A DNA stretch of 33,941 nucleotides from Salpingoeca rosetta (GCA_033442325.1 JAWQFM010000006.1:1961361-1995301); one strand, 5' to 3'. Counted from the stretch's first letter, positions 7,101 through 25,100 are shown. The notes: generated by a model not told the origin, from the letters alone. Translations and numbers: made by a program.

Positions 7101-10100
7101 GCATGGCCCGCCCAACGCTCGGCAGGCGGCCAGCAGCACCATCCAGTCCGCGATAGTGGCCCACGTCCTGCTGCACATTGTCCTCGTGGAGCGGGTTCAT
7201 TGGCACCTCGTGGTGGTCCAGGCCAGTGGCCACGCCCAGGTACAGGCTGTGGCGGTCCTTGGTGGGCGATGCGACAATGTGGCCAAACTGCTGCTCGCGC
7301 CGAAGTGCGTCCTCGTGCGCCTGCAGCTCCACATCCCGCTTGCGTCGCTGCTTCCGGCGATGCACCAGCAGCAGCACAACCAGCATGATGAGCACCACGC
7401 CGCCAACCACGGCAGGGACAATGGGAACAATGAGGGCAGTGGACCCCTCCGCTCCCGGTGGCGCCAGCGACACCGTTGACGATGTCGACGCGGCGGTTAT
7501 CGTCGTCGTCGTCGTACCAGTCGCAGGCGGCGCTGTTGTTCCCGGCCCAGCGGTCGTGGTCACAGACGGCATTGGTGACGCAGCAACCTGCGAGCCTTCA
7601 AAGTTGACCTTCATCTGGTCCTGCTGCACCGCATACGCGGTTTGGTCTGCAGAGCGGCCGTCAGCGTGCACGACATCCACGCCCACGCTGCCGCGCGAGA
7701 ATGTGATGCGCACCACCAGCGACGGCGGCACCCCCGCAAACCGCCACAGGCCGTCCAGGACAGCCGCCTCCAGCGCAGCAAGGCGCGTGGCATTGCCCAC
7801 AATTGCGTCATAGTCCAGCGGCAGCAGGAACGACGTTGTCAGGGGCTTCTCGTCCACGCTGCCGGGTTGATCACACACGCTCGTGTTTTGCACCACGCCC
7901 ACCAGCGGCGAGTAGCCCTGGGGCTTTGATACGGCAGCCGCCACGTGGGCGCCCTGCCGTGCTTGACCGTTGCTGTCAGCGGCAAAGGTGACGTTGGCGA
8001 GCTGCGAATCCAGCGCGGTGTCATAAGCAGGGGCATCGTCCACGTGACGGGTCATAAACAGGAGCCGGTCAGGGGAGAATGCGCCCTCCGTCGACACGGT
8101 CAGCTGCACAACCGAGACGCCCCCGCTGATGTTGGTCGGTGGCGTGTCACCCAAGGGAATCACCGTGCGATACAGCGACGGCGCAACGGCAAAGGGGACA
8201 GCGGCCTGAATCCACGCGCCCGCGTATCCGTCTGGTTTCCCCGGTGACAGCAGATCTCCAGCCAGTGGCTCCGCGAGTGTCCAGTTGGCTCGCTGTGCGT
8301 CGCCGGAACCCGCTGCTGGCTCAATGTCGAACACGATTGCAGTGTCGGTTGGACTCGCAGCTTGGTGCGACGCAGTGAGCGCGAGCACAGACACCTCCAG
8401 CAGGCAGCCGTCCGGGGACGGCAGCACTCGCACGCGCGGCGCAGACACGAAGCGCAGCAGGTCAAAGTTGACGGCTGCAAGGAAGGACACATCCAGCACA
8501 TCAATGTGACCATTGACATTGGCGTCCATGACGCGCTTCTCGTCTGCCGACAGCGAAGACCGGTTCACGGCGGGATCCACAAGCTCGCGGCCAAGGAAGC
8601 GAAGCAGGGCGCCCGCGTCCTTGATGTCAAACACGCAATCGCACAGCACATCACCCAGCATGCGCGGCTCTGGGCACGATGCAGGGTCGCATGGCGTTGC
8701 ACGCCGTGCACGCAGCAGTGACTCGCTGTCACGGGCAACACGACCATCAGCAGCGGCAGCAGCAACAGCAGTCGCCGTGGTGTCGACGGCACTGTCACGA
8801 CGACGACGACGACGACCGGGGGTGCTGGCCGTGCATGGTGTGGTGGTGGCGTTGCTTGCAGCCGTGCCGATAACAACATCGACGCTGCCAGCAACAATAG
8901 CACGCGGTGTGGGCGCGCCAATGGTCAGCTGCTGTGATGAGGCATCAGCGATGGTGTTCACAACGCCGTGAATGGCGGTGATGCATCCAGAAGTAGAGTT
9001 GGCACCATTCTCAGGCGCAAGAACGCGGAAGCGGAGCGTGGCGACGGTCAGGACGCCAACCGCAGCATTCTTCTGCAACAGGCCGCCAAAGGATGCCACG
9101 CCCGGTGGGCTGTTGAGAGAAGCCACAAACACGCCGCCTTCCCACAAGGACGACGTTTGTGCAATGGAGACCGCCTGAAGGATGGTGGGGTCGTACACAA
9201 TATCGAGATCAAGGGCTCCCAGCACACTGGCACCAGCGCTGACGCGCACGGGCACGTCGAATGTGGCGCCCGGCTGCTGTGCCGGCACCGGCACCCCAGA
9301 CAGCGACCCGAGATCAACATCCCCATCCCCGGCTTGCAGGTTCGCAGCAAACATCCGGCTCCCCATCGCGCCTCCTACCGTGGCCCGCACCACATACTCA
9401 AGCTCAACAGCGCTGTTCCCAAGCAGCGTCACTGCGCCACTCGCGCCGTCAACCGCAACGGCCCCGCTGCTGTCGCCCCTCACAGAGAACGCCACCAGCC
9501 CACCAATGCGTGCGCTCCCGCTCCCGCTCACATCAATCAGGTCAGCGTACTTGCGCCCGTCGCTCAGCACAACGTCCACCTGGCCCCGTGACACGTGGCC
9601 CACCACACCAACCACCGTCCCCGCAAGCGTCAGGCCCTCAAACCCAACAACACGCACAGACGTGTTGGTGGCAGCAACGTCGGCCCGCGCCACAAACTGG
9701 CTCACTGCGCCAGCCACGCGCGCCTCCACGCTCGCGTTCCCAAACGCCGTGCCAGCACCCGTGTACGACACAACCGTGCCGCTGCTCACACGCACCACAT
9801 CGCTTCCAGCAACCACGGAGTAGCTCACCACAGCCCCGTCCGTGCTCACGTCAACGCGCTCGCCGCTCGTCAGCACCAGCACCGTCTCCAGCACAGCCTC
9901 CTGCCACACCCCCGTGTCTGCGTATTGCTGCAGCTGGTGCACCTCCACACCACGGGAGCCGGCGTACGCGGGCCACGGCCGCAGCCGCGCCTCCACGCTC
10001 GCCGTGCCGACAACGGTGATGTTGATGCTGTGCGTCACGCTCACGTGGCTGAAGCCGATGGTCAGGGTGCCTGTGCCCGTGAGGCCGGCGCTGTTGGTGG

Positions 10101-22100: not shown

Positions 22101-25100
22101 AGAGCCGCGTCAGGCCAGTGGTTGATGCAGGGAGCGCAGGCGTTGACACGCTGACGGTGGTGGGAGGGAACCAGCGGGCAACCGGGATGGGCTCGCACAC
22201 CCTATCTGAGGTTGGCGTGGGCGCCACGGCTTCGTATTCGCCAACGCGGCAGGGGGTGAGTGGCGCACACACGGTGTTGCTGGTGGGCGTACACGCCTGC
22301 TTCTGGTACTGGGTGGCGGCGGCAGCGGCGGCGGCGGTGGTGTTGCAAACGTCGCACAGGTTCTGGCAGTTGTCGCCCCAGGTGGTGGAAGGGCAGACGC
22401 AGTCGTAAGCTGCCAGCAGGTTGAGGCACGTGCCACCATTGGAGCATGGGTTTGGGTCGCACTCGTTGATGTCTTCGTCGCACAGGTCGCCCGTGAAGCC
22501 AGCGGGGCAGGTGCACTTGAACCCGGACGGCACGAGGTTTGGCACGCAGTTGACAAACACGCACTCTGCGGCGGCGTCAAAGAGCTGCCGGCTGGTGGTG
22601 CCTTGCTGAAGCTTGCCGCACTCCTGCACACAGTCGAGCTCGCACGTGTGCTCCTGGTCTGAGAGGGGCACAAGCAGGCAGTTGAATGCAGAGGAGCAAG
22701 AGAGGGCGCCTGCGTCGTCTTGCAGACACGCGGAGAAGACGTTGTCGCATGTCTCCGAGCACGAGGCGATGGCGGCGGGGACGTCAAACAGGTCTGTGCA
22801 AGTGCTGTTGTTCTGGCACATGTCGGCTTCGCAGCTGAGGAGGGTCTCGCACCGGGGGCCCGTGTAGCTGGCAGGGCAGGTGCAGGTGGCCGTGTTGACG
22901 CCGTCCACGCACGTGCCGCCGTTGAGGCACATACCCTCCACGCAGTCATCGGGGTTTGTTTCGCAGTAGACGCCCTCAAACCCAGTGGGGCACTGGCAGC
23001 GGAAATCCGGCAGGAGCGGGCAGTCGTCGACAATGCACTGCAGCGCATCTTCGAAGAGCGCCTCGCCAGCCTGGGTGCTAAACCGCTGGGCACAGTCGCG
23101 AAGGCAGGCCTCGTCGCACTGGTCTGTCCCGGCGCGGGCAACTGCCTGCAGGCAAAGTAAGGTGGCATCCTGCGGGCCACTGCAGTCTGCGTTTGCCGCG
23201 CATGCGTCGATCGAAGGCTCGCAGTAGCGGTGGCAAGCCCGGGGCTCACTCACACACGTGGCGTTGTTCTGGCACATGTTGGCAATGCTTTCTGTGGTGC
23301 AGTTGAGGCGTGTCTGGCAGCGGTCGCCATCAAAGCCGGTGGGGCAGGCGCAGAAGAAGGCGCCAATCAGGTCTGTGCACGTGCCGCCGTTCAAGCACGG
23401 GTCTGGATCGCACTCGTTGATGTCCGTCTCGCAGAAATCGCCCTCGTAGCCGTCTGGGCAGCCGCAGGTGATGCCTTCCAGGATGGGGGTGAGGTCACAC
23501 TCCTCGACAACGCAGGTTGCGGCTGTGGTGAAGATGGCCTTGCTTGCGTTGTTCATGATGTAGGGGAGGCCGCAGTCGAGGACGGTGTCCAGGGAGGCGG
23601 TGCCCTGGGTACCGTCTGGGATGAGGAGGCACGTCTTGCGAGGGCTGCACTGGGCGTCCTGGTCGCAGGCCAGGTACTCAGCAGCGCACTGCTGCACACA
23701 GCGCGGGGCATCCTCAAACACGGGGCTGCATGTGCCGTTGTTCTGGCAGGGGTTCTCCTGTGCGTCGCAGCCGACAAAGGCGCCGCAGGTGGGCCCGTCA
23801 AACCCCTCGACACAGGAGCAGTTGAAGCCGTTGTGGCCCTCGATGCAGGTGCCGCGGTTCTGGCAGGGGTTCGGCTCGCACTCCTTGACATCGACGTCGC
23901 ACAGGTCGCCCGTTCTGCCAGGTGGGCAGGCGCAGGTGACGTTTGAAGTGTACGAGCCGCCGCCGTCGGCGTCGCAGTTTTCCCAGATGCAGTTTGCTGC
24001 AGCTTCGTAGATGAGGAGGGCGTCTGGATCTGTGATGGTGGTTGAACAGCACTCGTCGGGAGAAGGGCAGGGCCGCGGGTCGAAGGTGACCACGGACATG
24101 AGGGCGGTGAGGCACATTTGCGCGCTGCTGCGCCGGCACTGCGATGTGTCCTGGCACGCGTCCAGCTCCACGGCACAGCGCTCCTCGCACGTGAGTGGGG
24201 CCATGACCTCCGTGCAGTTGCCGTTCCATTGACATGGATTTGGATCGCAGGACGGCCCCGTTTGCCAAAAGGGCAGGGTGGTTGTGGTGGTTGTTGTTGT
24301 GGTAGTGGTAGTTGTGGTGCTTGTGGTTGTCACGCACACTTGCTCGTAGTCCGGGCAGCAGTCGCCGTTGGGGACGCACTCGTTGTCGCATTGGCACGGG
24401 TGCAGCCTGTTGTATCCGCACCCCTTGAGCGCACACAGCGACGTGGACTGGTCCACAGTTGTCGATGTTGCCGGTGTCGTCTCATCCTGTTGTGCTTGCA
24501 CTGTGTTTTGGTTCGGTGGGGCAAGGGGGGGGAGGGGCGGGGTTGGTTTGTGTGTGTGTGTGTGTGTGTGTGTGTGTGTGTGTGTTGTGTGTGTGTGTGT
24601 GTGTGTGTGTGTGTGTGTGTTTGTGTGTGTGTGTGTGTGTGTGTGTGTGTGTGAGTTGCGAGCGAGTCGTGCATGAATATATATGTATGTGTGTGTGTGT
24701 TTGTGTGTGTTTGTGTGTGTGTGTGTGTTTGTATGTTTGTTGCTGCTGTGGGGTCAACAGCTGGGCCAAGCGGTGCTTGCAAGCACGCCATGTGGAGCAG
24801 ATCAACAACACATTTGGCAAGCAAGAAAGGAAGACCACGTGCAAGGTCGTGACATCAGCAAGAACAGCCAGAAACACACGCATGCAGAAGTAACGGTGCA
24901 CATCAGAGACCACGTCATGCGCATGCGTGTGTGTATGTTCAAGTGGGTTCTTTGCGTGCTGAACTTGCCTGCTAGTGGCGGTGTGAATAAGCCGCAAACA
25001 AATAGGGCAGGGAGGAGCAGCAGGGTGATGGCTGCGCGTGTGGGGTTGAGGCGGCAACTGCTGGTGCAGCCAATTGGATGTCGGCATGCAGTGCCCTTTC

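Follow-up and report, generated by a model that had tools for sequence, protein, structure and literature searches.

Results

A single giant frame on the minus strand

The DNA analysed here (the window) is a stretch of 33,941 nucleotides from the 55 Mb genome of Salpingoeca rosetta (GCA_033442325.1 JAWQFM010000006.1:1961361-1995301). Its minus strand holds an uninterrupted ORF of 6020 aa at positions 6439-24501, in which residue i corresponds to nt 24501-3(i-1). The parts of the gene outside the repeated region are the following:

6439..24500, minus strand: giant exon with the 6020-aa ORF (sequence reading and Pfam)
24969..25155, minus strand: probable exon 1, putative (read from the sequence)
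22387..24426, minus strand: N-terminal region with Somatomedin B (residues 26-57), EGF repeats (about 330-705) and Thr-rich linkers (Pfam)
7357..7440, minus strand: transmembrane helix, residues about 5688-5715 (weak TM_ErbB1 match)

The giant exon encodes, in this order, Somatomedin B (Pfam E 1e-6), an EGF/Thr-rich stalk (EGF E 1e-23), three super-modules, the transmembrane helix and the start of the cytoplasmic tail, which putative 3' exons would continue. A basic stop-transfer stretch follows the helix and precedes the tail, and the tail portion located on the large exon (residues 5723-6020) contains neither WIRS nor RVxF (PP1) motifs. The putative exon 1 starts with an ATG at 25155-25153, encodes a signal-peptide-like hydrophobic stretch and ends with an AG/GCAAGT donor; joining its 187 nt to an acceptor ending at 24501 preserves the frame of the giant ORF. 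Expression data are thin: of two RNA-seq runs, one has 13 reads and the other 1 read across 5.1 kb of the gene. A DNA contig from a public run spans this tested 5.1 kb with zero differences, although it may be source data, and the assembly has a gap 1.7 kb upstream.

Three super-modules built around a TMEM132 core

Self-comparison and MAFFT alignment revealed three colinear modules (M1, M2 and M3) of ~1550-1650 aa each, which start near residues 703, 2324 and 3895. Each super-module runs from a TNFR-like Cys repeat through a TMEM132 core, an extra Ig-like region, a canonical cohesin, a linker with two dibasic sites and a dockerin to an unnamed domain of ~180 aa. The core itself consists of the 2nd-domain sandwich, a cohesin-like domain and Ig domains 4, 5 and 6. 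The animal comparator is P0144, a pipefish TMEM132D-like protein.

22267..22395, minus strand: start of M1, TNFR_c6 repeat, residues 703-745 (Pfam 25 bits, cut-off 29.4; aligns with the M2 copy)
17404..17532, minus strand: start of M2, TNFR_c6 repeat, residues 2324-2366 (Pfam 37 bits, above cut-off)
20098..21969, minus strand: M1 TMEM132 core, residues about 845-1468 (Pfam and module alignment)
15202..17109, minus strand: M2 TMEM132 core, residues 2465-3100 (AlphaFold, hhalign)
10342..12342, minus strand: M3 TMEM132 core, residues about 4054-4720 (module alignment; Pfam 5th and 6th weak)
14164..15201, minus strand: M2 extra Ig-like region, residues 3101-3446 (hhalign homology to P0144 extends no further than its 6th domain)

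The initial annotation had proposed three TMEM132-like ectodomain modules and had named TMEM132 profile searches beforehand as the test, and these gave significant matches. Ig_TMEM132_4th scored 51 bits in M1 and 75 bits in M2 (cut-off 27), with no Pfam match in M3. Ig_TMEM132_5th scored around its cut-off in M1 (26-31 bits), as did Ig_TMEM132_6th in M1 (27 bits) and M2 (32 bits); both were weak in M3, the most diverged of the three cores. The 2nd Ig-like and cohesin-like 3rd domains of the window copies had no direct Pfam match, and among 49 family members PF23481 was matched by eight and PF23039 by five. With phmmer the family reaches E 4e-15 against an animal TMEM132D-like protein, and comparing its profiles with P0144 by hhalign gave 99.6% (E 1e-24) for domains 2-4 (residues 120-535) and 99.5% (E 2e-22) for domains 5-6 (residues 498-795).

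The internal cohesin-like segments had also been placed correctly. They occupy residues about 965-1120 in M1 (nt 21142-21609), 2581-2746 in M2 (nt 16264-16761; followed by the 4th Ig domain at residues 2752-2851) and about 4178-4335 in M3 (nt 11497-11970). The AlphaFold model of the M2 copy has a pLDDT of 91.7 and compares with solved cohesins at Z 12.6 to 10.5. The claim of extra Big-like sequence behind the core received weak direct support, as the family profile of the extra Ig-like region matched an S-layer Ig-like domain in the PDB at E 0.004. Between the last core and the transmembrane helix lie ~970 residues, made up of extra Ig-like region, cohesin, dockerin, unnamed domain and stalk.

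The modules are only 25-35% identical outside a converted block, a near-identical stretch shared by M1 (residues 1449-1904) and M3 (residues 4701-5160), where identity is 63-98% by piece.

Each module carries a canonical cohesin, a dibasic linker and a dockerin

The features behind the extra Ig-like region are:

18661..19104, minus strand: M1 canonical cohesin, residues 1800-1947 (Pfam Cohesin 41.8 bits)
13738..14163, minus strand: M2 canonical cohesin, residues 3447-3588 (Pfam Cohesin 30-34 bits)
8869..9342, minus strand: M3 canonical cohesin, residues 5054-5211 (Pfam Cohesin 41.5 bits)
18538..18645, minus strand: M1 linker with dibasic sites RRRR/S (1953-1956) and RHRR/A (1984-1987) (sequence; family conservation)
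13633..13722, minus strand: M2 linker with RRRR/S (3594-3597), RARR/A (3619-3622) and a Gln-rich spacer (sequence; family conservation)
8428..8814, minus strand: M3 linker (RRRRRR/D 5230-5235, RARR/A 5264-5267) and dockerin (about 5275-5358; nt 8428-8679) (alignment, loop pattern)
18262..18504, minus strand: M1 dockerin, about 2000-2080, two 12-residue loops with a small Cys cluster ahead (aligned loops)
13336..13584, minus strand: M2 dockerin, about 3640-3722, two 12-residue loops (Pfam Dockerin_1 below cut-off; family profile)
17722..18261, minus strand: M1 unnamed ~180-aa beta-rich domain behind the dockerin, ending near a Y-x-P-L motif (kept in 89 cassettes)
12832..13335, minus strand: M2 unnamed domain behind the dockerin (family conservation)

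A second, canonical cohesin in each module, as originally described, was recovered by Pfam Cohesin (PF00963), whose cut-off of 24.1 bits is exceeded by all three copies. The family profile of this cohesin matched the solved cohesin 4ums (E 1.6e-6), and its comparison by hhalign with the TMEM132-type cohesin-like domain gave 94.7% (E 6e-8). The count of six cohesin folds for three dockerins stands, with one TMEM132-type and one canonical domain per module. The unnamed domain had zero Pfam or PDB sequence matches.

The dockerins are less readily recognised by Pfam: with Dockerin_1 (PF00404), M2 reached 16-18 bits, short of the 22.9 cut-off, and M1 and M3 had no match. Paralogues in the same genome do pass this cut-off, at 33.6 bits. 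The proposal of a dockerin in every module was nevertheless upheld, because the two 12-residue calcium loops lie at aligned positions in all three and the family profile matched the solved dockerin 4fl4_A (E 1.9e-6), as well as 4dh2_B, 2ccl_B and 1ohz_B. Across 89 cohesin-dockerin cassettes, both loops have D/N at calcium positions 1, 3, 5, 9 and 12 in 85-100%, and 81 of the cassettes have Cys at loop position 6, preceded at a short distance by a Cys cluster. In the M3 dockerin, loop 1 is degenerate, with Leu at calcium position 3, the sole such case among the 89, and the residues at loop positions 10-11 vary among the M1, M2 and M3 dockerins.

Between cohesin and dockerin, strict R-x-K/R-R sites occur twice in 54 of the 89 cassettes and once in 25; the remaining 10 have KR or RR dibasic pairs only. 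The median spacing of the dibasic sites is 22 residues. Matches to the P-domain of convertases are present in the S. rosetta genome.

Structure prediction of the M2 cohesin with the M2 dockerin gave an ipSAE of 0.44 (runs 0.43, 0.44 and 0.67), against 0.03 for the best control; the runs share at least 86% of their contacts, with a partner pLDDT of at least 68. When the method was calibrated, 51 of 78 solved complexes reached the mark, as did 2 of 108 mismatched pairs. A pass of 0.60 or lower counts as weak, and so the support here is weak; moreover, the score is blind to cis versus trans and to which cohesin is bound, and may stem from solved structures of such complexes that the predictor has memorised.

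Most of the third cohesin-dockerin pair (7867-9342) falls below position 9290, and the three-module feature therefore spans about 7867-22395. The start of the interval first proposed, 9290-22150, had to be moved, since the third cohesin (8869-9342) and dockerin (8428-8679) fall almost wholly below it.

The unit is widespread

At least 10 giant frames of the S. rosetta genome contain the TMEM132-cohesin-dockerin unit, as do at least 89 distant proteins; each has 1-4 units. In the 89 cassettes the dockerin follows its canonical cohesin by ~55-100 residues, always at 1:1, and the same adjacency holds in every paralogue and in all inspected Pfam dockerin matches of the S. rosetta genome. A cassette trails 67 of the 78 testable TMEM132-type modules. 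In a tree the cassettes form positional clades, and in relatives from other organisms the three units recur in identical order. Unit positions look conserved among relatives, and the triplication is not peculiar to this S. rosetta gene but an architecture inherited within a large family.

Paralogues in the S. rosetta genome and metagenomic relatives join the super-module with cadherin repeats. The 6020-aa ORF had no Cadherin match in Pfam at E up to 0.1, none of the 150 cadherin matches listed for the genome falls in the window, and scans of N- and C-terminal stretches of P0001 and P0002, the proteins closest to this one in the cassette tree, showed no cadherin repeats.

Discussion

Relation to known proteins

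The animal TMEM132 family comprises TMEM132A-E (Pfam PF23481, PF23039, PF16070, PF23486 and PF23487). The S. rosetta protein shares with it the core domains and their order (2nd Ig-like, cohesin-like 3rd, Ig 4th, 5th and 6th) and the type I membrane topology. However, animal TMEM132 has a single core with the membrane anchor close behind, whereas the S. rosetta chain has three. Animal members also lack a counterpart of the M2 extra Ig-like region, the canonical cohesin, the dibasic sites, the dockerin and the unnamed domain. That animal TMEM132 has no dockerin, as the initial annotation stated, agrees with P0144 and, for vertebrates, with PMC6030884. Conversely, TMEM132_N and TMEM132_C have no Pfam match in the S. 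rosetta ORF.

The occurrence of TMEM132 modules as repeats in pre-animal proteins was reported in 2017 (Sanchez-Pulido & Ponting, PMC6030884). That account, citing Nichols et al. 2012, names coherins, lefftyrins and hedglings as pre-animal cadherins with this architecture; they are giant proteins on the surface of choanoflagellates and sponges that contain it in repeated form, some with a Pfam cohesin. The S. rosetta protein resembles them in its giant size, its repeated TMEM132 architecture and its cohesins, and differs in having Somatomedin B, EGF and TNFR-like repeats in place of cadherin repeats. It is a member of a pre-animal family assembled from TMEM132-type modules, and its three super-modules are ancient. 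PMC6030884 mentions neither the dockerin nor the paired dibasic sites, and we found no published account of a link between TMEM132 and dockerins.

Compared with the type I pairs of bacterial cellulosomes (PDB 1OHZ, 2CCL, 4FL4 and 4DH2), the cassette is recognisable by profile and shares the canonical D/N calcium loops. Its setting, on the other hand, is eukaryotic, the partners sit ~55-100 residues apart on one chain and flank protease sites, loop position 6 is mostly Cys with a Cys cluster upstream, and no enzyme or carbohydrate-binding module is attached.

A possible internal clasp and its alternatives

Given the strict 1:1 adjacency of cohesin and dockerin, we lean, by a modest degree, towards a self-clasp in which each pair holds the protease-cut fragments of this three-unit receptor together. 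A convertase of the furin/kexin type, suggested by the motifs, would cut both dibasic sites in the secretory pathway and excise the linker. The dockerin would become a new N-terminus and would remain plugged into the cohesin just upstream, so that the ectodomain would be a chain of four pieces joined by three non-covalent, calcium-dependent cohesin-dockerin clasps. Such joints could be strong yet releasable, allowing shedding, force sensing or exchange of pieces. The TMEM132-type cohesin-like domains would not be the sockets of the dockerins, and animal TMEM132 would correspond to the core alone, with everything from the extra Ig domains onward lost.

Joints of comparable logic are familiar. 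The Notch S1 furin site, the GAIN domain of adhesion GPCRs and the mucin SEA domain are cut in the secretory pathway, after which the halves stay joined non-covalently in a force-sensitive or shedding-prone joint. The likeness would be one of function only: the folds are unrelated, and the joint proposed here is a cohesin-dockerin pair, three in series.

Bacterial cohesin-dockerin systems work between molecules. By analogy, the pairs might form in trans, with another molecule or a paralogue, yielding a surface lattice, cell-cell or cell-matrix adhesion in the manner of a scaffoldin, while the dibasic sites serve maturation only. The many cassette-bearing paralogues in one genome would suit this, as would the differences at loop positions 10-11 among the three dockerins, which are expected if specificities differ. 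We nevertheless regard pairing in trans as unlikely, since a cis pair requires strict adjacency, 1:1 stoichiometry and a short linker, none of which is necessary in trans, and the positional clades fit a cohesin and dockerin evolving as a unit. It seems less probable still that some or all dockerins dock onto the TMEM132-type domains, in cis or between molecules, so that the locus would keep an ancestral ligand lost in animals. This idea, raised in the initial annotation together with spare docking sites, draws on the true cohesin fold of the TMEM132-type domain, its homology to the cassette cohesin, the co-travel of core and dockerin in 67 of 78 modules and the excess of six cohesin folds over three dockerins. 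The dockerin survey that it called for pointed the other way: every inspected dockerin in the S. rosetta genome, as in all cassettes seen, has its own canonical cohesin next to it, which is therefore the obvious partner. Furthermore, animals retain the TMEM132-type domain without any dockerin (P0144; PMC6030884), and it must therefore have another role there.

An assembly duplication, several genes read as one, or a pseudogene could be suspected from the near-identical M1/M3 block, the nearby assembly gap and the sparse RNA reads. Such an artefact is highly improbable, given a stop-free frame over 18 kb, the low identity of the modules outside the converted block, the exact match of the public contig, though possibly source data, and relatives in other organisms with three units in the same order. 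We conclude that the locus is one genuine gene and that it encodes a giant type I surface protein of a holozoan protist.

Implications for pre-animal receptors

More broadly, it is conceivable, although we hold this rather tentatively, that pre-animal receptors re-used the cohesin-dockerin glue of cellulosomes as a protease-cut, calcium-held internal joint, here three in series, and that the dockerins might additionally or instead represent a class of ligand that the TMEM132 cohesin-like domain has since lost. If the former is true, these proteins would contain a new kind of non-covalent clasp, with a logic comparable to that of the Notch S1, GAIN and SEA joints. If the dockerins are the lost ligand class, the family would offer the first testable partner of TMEM132.

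Gene structure and module layout

The window, taken from contig 6 (1961361-1995301) of a eukaryotic assembly of 55.4 Mb in 68 contigs, contains a single uninterrupted open reading frame (ORF) of 6020 codons on the minus strand (6439-24501). It is preceded by a probable first exon, after which an acceptor ending at 24501 would, on our reading of the sequence, keep the giant frame:

25155-24969, minus strand, probable exon 1, with an ATG, a hydrophobic signal-like stretch and a consensus GC-AG donor (AG/GCAAGT)

The putative intron (24502-24968) consists largely of CA repeats. The apparent dip in GC content at 25-27 kb is due to an assembly gap, a run of N at ~26170-26960 with CT/GA dinucleotide repeats on both flanks. 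Near the other end of the protein, a transmembrane helix (residues ~5688-5715) leads into a basic stop-transfer stretch, behind which lies a tail, and a downstream minus-strand ORF (4109-5500) probably represents another exon for the cytoplasmic tail of the same protein. Pfam found no domain in the unspliced downstream ORFs; the ORF at 4109-5500 contains a run of G-Y-L-D-V-x-P tyrosine motifs (4400-4765), plus Y-I-N-V and Y-A-D-V.

According to Pfam, the N-terminal region carries a Somatomedin B domain (residues 26-57) and many EGF repeats (~330-705). The EGF repeats (22546-24188, minus strand) alternate with a repeated Cys-containing segment of ~70 residues and Thr-rich linkers, and residues 71-396 and 408-713 form internal repeats that are ~34% identical. 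Behind this region follow three super-modules (M1, M2 and M3), each of which opens with a TNFR_c6 repeat (residues 703, 2324 and 3895; Pfam). Chunked self-BLAST and MAFFT alignment revealed that the modules, which were hidden in a whole-protein self-BLAST, are colinear over ~1500 residues. Their identity is 25-35%, with the exception of one block of ~1.4 kb, in which M1 residues 1449-1904 (18790-20157) and M3 residues 4701-5160 (9022-10401; both minus strand) are 63-98% identical by piece. This block, whose end lies ~30 residues inside the canonical cohesin, looks like the result of recent gene conversion. An assembly artefact was rejected as the source of the three modules.

Of two raw RNA-seq runs, one placed a single read and the other 13 reads on a 5.1-kb stretch of M2, too few for confirming the gene model or excluding introns; expression in the sampled runs would therefore be low or condition-dependent. 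A fragmentary contig set, possibly derived from RNA, covered 28 of the 30 bins of the tested M2 stretch. CAG/CTG repeats (Gln-rich spacer, M2 linker, 13640-13680) recruit reads and contigs that belong to other parts of the genome, and the read joints seen in the M2 stretch, which sit on such repeats, were discarded as spurious.

The modules contain a TMEM132 core

The initial annotation had described the modules as TMEM132-like, a reading that depends on significant matches to TMEM132 profiles. Such matches were obtained both with Pfam and by profile-profile comparison, and the reading therefore stands. In M1 and M2, Ig_TMEM132_4th reached 51 and 75 bits, respectively (cut-off 27), and the 5th and 6th TMEM132 domains scored around their cut-offs, M3 being the weakest copy. 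An exhaustive HMMER search with M2 residues 2380-3450 as query matched 394 proteins at E <=1e-3 and 204 at E <=1e-10, many of them with 2 to 6 matched stretches; a cluster look-up showed that one member of this family is a Salpingoeca urceolata protein. Two of the matches are true animal TMEM132 sequences: a pipefish "transmembrane protein 132D-like" (P0144; E 3.9e-15), which has all seven Pfam TMEM132 domains, and an unnamed 556-aa fragment (P0135; E 3.1e-16), which has the 3rd to 6th.

The family profile of the N-terminal part of the core (A1, 49 sequences) aligned with residues 120-535 of P0144, which span the 2nd, the cohesin-like 3rd and the 4th domains (hhalign, 99.6%, E 1e-24), and that of the middle part (A3, 48 sequences) aligned with residues 498-795, which span the 5th and 6th (99.5%, E 2e-22). 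Homology to P0144 ends at the 6th domain and is followed by ~345 residues of extra Ig-like sequence without animal counterpart. Pfam recognized the 4th domain in 48/49 family members, the 2nd in 8/49, the 3rd in 5/49, the 5th in 35/48 and the 6th in 24/48.

An AlphaFold model of M2 residues 2455-2860, built with A1, had a pLDDT of 91.7 and a pTM of 0.85. In an all-against-all structural search, model residues 127-292 matched a series of solved cohesins (Z 12.6 to 10.5), including non-cellulosomal cohesins of Clostridium perfringens and Archaeoglobus. The top match was a cohesin-FN3 double module (rmsd 9.2 Å over 197 residues), and single-domain cohesins superposed with an rmsd of ~3-4 Å over 131-146 residues. 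The cohesin fold was resolved only by the all-against-all aligner; with Foldseek, the three-domain model drew for the most part generic multi-sandwich proteins, among them integrin legs and complement C3. The top PDB matches of the A1 profile were two Ruminococcus cohesins (E 0.013 and 0.033), and the TMEM132-type cohesin-like domain also aligned with the canonical cohesin that follows each core (hhalign, 94.7%, E 6e-8). The internal cohesin-like segment proposed earlier for M2 (16360-16740) is enclosed by the domain delimited here:

16264-16761, minus strand, cohesin-like domain of M2, from the structural match
~21142-21609, minus strand, cohesin-like domain of M1, placed by alignment
~11497-11970, minus strand, cohesin-like domain of M3, placed by alignment

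A conserved cohesin-dockerin cassette follows each core

In each module, the core and the extra Ig-like sequence lead into a canonical cohesin (Pfam; ~42 bits in M1, 34 in M2 and 42 in M3), followed in order by RRRR, a variable stretch of 20-30 residues, R-x-R-R-A, a small cluster of Cys residues, two loops and an unnamed domain. The two 12-residue loops (D-x-N/D-x-D/N-...-D), ~40 residues apart, constitute the dockerin, although in the window Pfam reported Dockerin_1 in M2 only, below the cut-off. These cassettes could be aligned throughout with others, giving 89 in total (14 paralogous ones from the S. rosetta genome and 75 from distant relatives). Positions 30-158 of the resulting profile match solved cohesins (4ums, E 1.6e-6), and positions 198-270 match solved dockerins (4fl4_A, E 1.9e-6; also 4dh2_B, 2ccl_B and 1ohz_B). 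In both loops, calcium-ligand positions 1, 3, 5, 9 and 12 carry D or N in 85-100% of the cassettes. Cys occupies position 6 of loop 1 in 81/89, and M3 alone has Leu at position 3 of that loop. The linker between cohesin and dockerin contains two strict R-x-K/R-R sites in 54/89 cassettes and one in 25/89, the remaining 10/89 having only KR or RR; the median spacing of the dibasic sites is 22 residues. Proprotein-convertase P domains are encoded in the S. rosetta genome.

The unnamed domain, conserved in the 89 cassettes and without sequence match in Pfam or the PDB, is found behind every dockerin and ends near G-Y-N-P-L:

7867-8427, minus strand, unnamed ~180-aa beta-rich domain
12832-13335, minus strand, unnamed ~180-aa beta-rich domain
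17722-18261, minus strand, unnamed ~180-aa beta-rich domain

A single-sequence fold of the M2 cassette had a pLDDT of 31.6 and was unusable as a model. In the ESM Atlas, the feature clusters nearest to the M2 cassette (12817-14181) are proteins of 180-280 aa with a cohesin and a dockerin, which are bacterial where taxa are recorded (Chloroflexota, Bacillota, Planctomycetota). As a pointer to the origin of the eukaryotic cassette, these small bacterial proteins are a lead, nothing more.

Distribution and history of the cassettes

The S. rosetta genome contains Ig_TMEM132_4th matches at 17 places in ~10 giant frames, together with 16 Cohesin and 14 Dockerin_1 matches, the latter two being paired at distances of 250-450 nt. 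Dockerin matches in shorter frames, too, turned out to belong to cassettes, each being preceded by a cohesin. All inspected Dockerin_1 matches of this genome adjoin a cohesin, and no free dockerin was found among them. Two paralogous cassettes, on contig 5 (L019, 1864900-1867300) and contig 12 (L020, 50600-53000), are almost identical, which suggests recent segmental duplication or assembly redundancy.

In distant relatives, a cassette lies ~536 residues after Ig 4 in 67 of the 78 testable TMEM132-type modules; 56 proteins have one cassette, 18 have two, 13 have three and one has four. In a quick maximum-likelihood tree, cassettes from different proteins cluster by their position (first, second or third). 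The M2 cassette falls into one clade (SH-aLRT 95) with the second cassettes of two relatives, P0001 and P0002, the middle cassette of a contig 7 paralogue and one cassette from the contig 5/12 paralogue. M1 is more loosely associated with the first cassettes of these neighbour proteins, and the tree did not resolve the placement of M3. Given these positional clades, the three-unit layout seems to be inherited and not a novelty. In many relatives, cadherin repeats lie between the units; Pfam found none in the 6020-aa ORF, nor in the N- and C-terminal stretches scanned of P0001 and P0002.

Discussion

The cohesin and dockerin of each cassette are adjacent, occur in a 1:1 ratio, co-evolve by position and have conserved putative processing sites between them, and the simplest reading of this arrangement is that the pair may form a self-clasp. 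A convertase would remove the linker between the two domains, and the dockerin would stay bound to the cohesin just upstream, such that the cut pieces would remain attached to each other. A predicted complex of the M2 cohesin (residues 3441-3597) and dockerin (3623-3730) had an ipSAE of 0.44 (runs 0.43, 0.44 and 0.67) versus 0.03 for the best control, with at least 86% of contacts shared between the runs and a partner pLDDT of at least 68. Of 78 solved complexes, 51 reached the ipSAE mark, as did 2 of 108 mismatches; passes at or below 0.60 count as weak and may stem from solved complexes already known to the predictor. The prediction thus lends weak support, speaking for likeness rather than binding, and would fit cis and trans pairing alike. 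According to the initial annotation, the TMEM132-type cohesin-like domains might instead be spare sockets for dockerins. We consider this improbable, as animals keep the TMEM132-type domain without any dockerin.

The molecular function of TMEM132 proteins is poorly understood, and we know of no binding partner of their cohesin-like domain. The TMEM132 architecture is older than animals and recurs as a building block of choanoflagellate and sponge cadherins, and in vertebrates the dockerin is not detectable (PMC6030884, Sanchez-Pulido & Ponting). Among the papers searched, the two that mention both dockerins and choanoflagellates do not describe a dockerin-TMEM132 linkage. New at this locus is a three-unit, cadherin-free variant that has EGF and TNFR-like repeats, and the family-wide coupling of the TMEM132 core to a presumably processed cohesin-dockerin pair appears to be undescribed so far.

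Genome editing has been reported for S. rosetta, which would make functional tests feasible. The pre-animal neighbour of the TMEM132 cohesin-like domain is a cohesin-dockerin pair that is complete, seems functional and carries conserved putative processing sites. It is conceivable that animal TMEM132 is what remains of a larger unit after loss of the clasp, and that cohesin-dockerin pairs may act in eukaryotes as cleavable mechanical joints. If the clasp is real, this would be, as far as we are aware, the first functional role proposed for eukaryotic cohesin-dockerin pairs.
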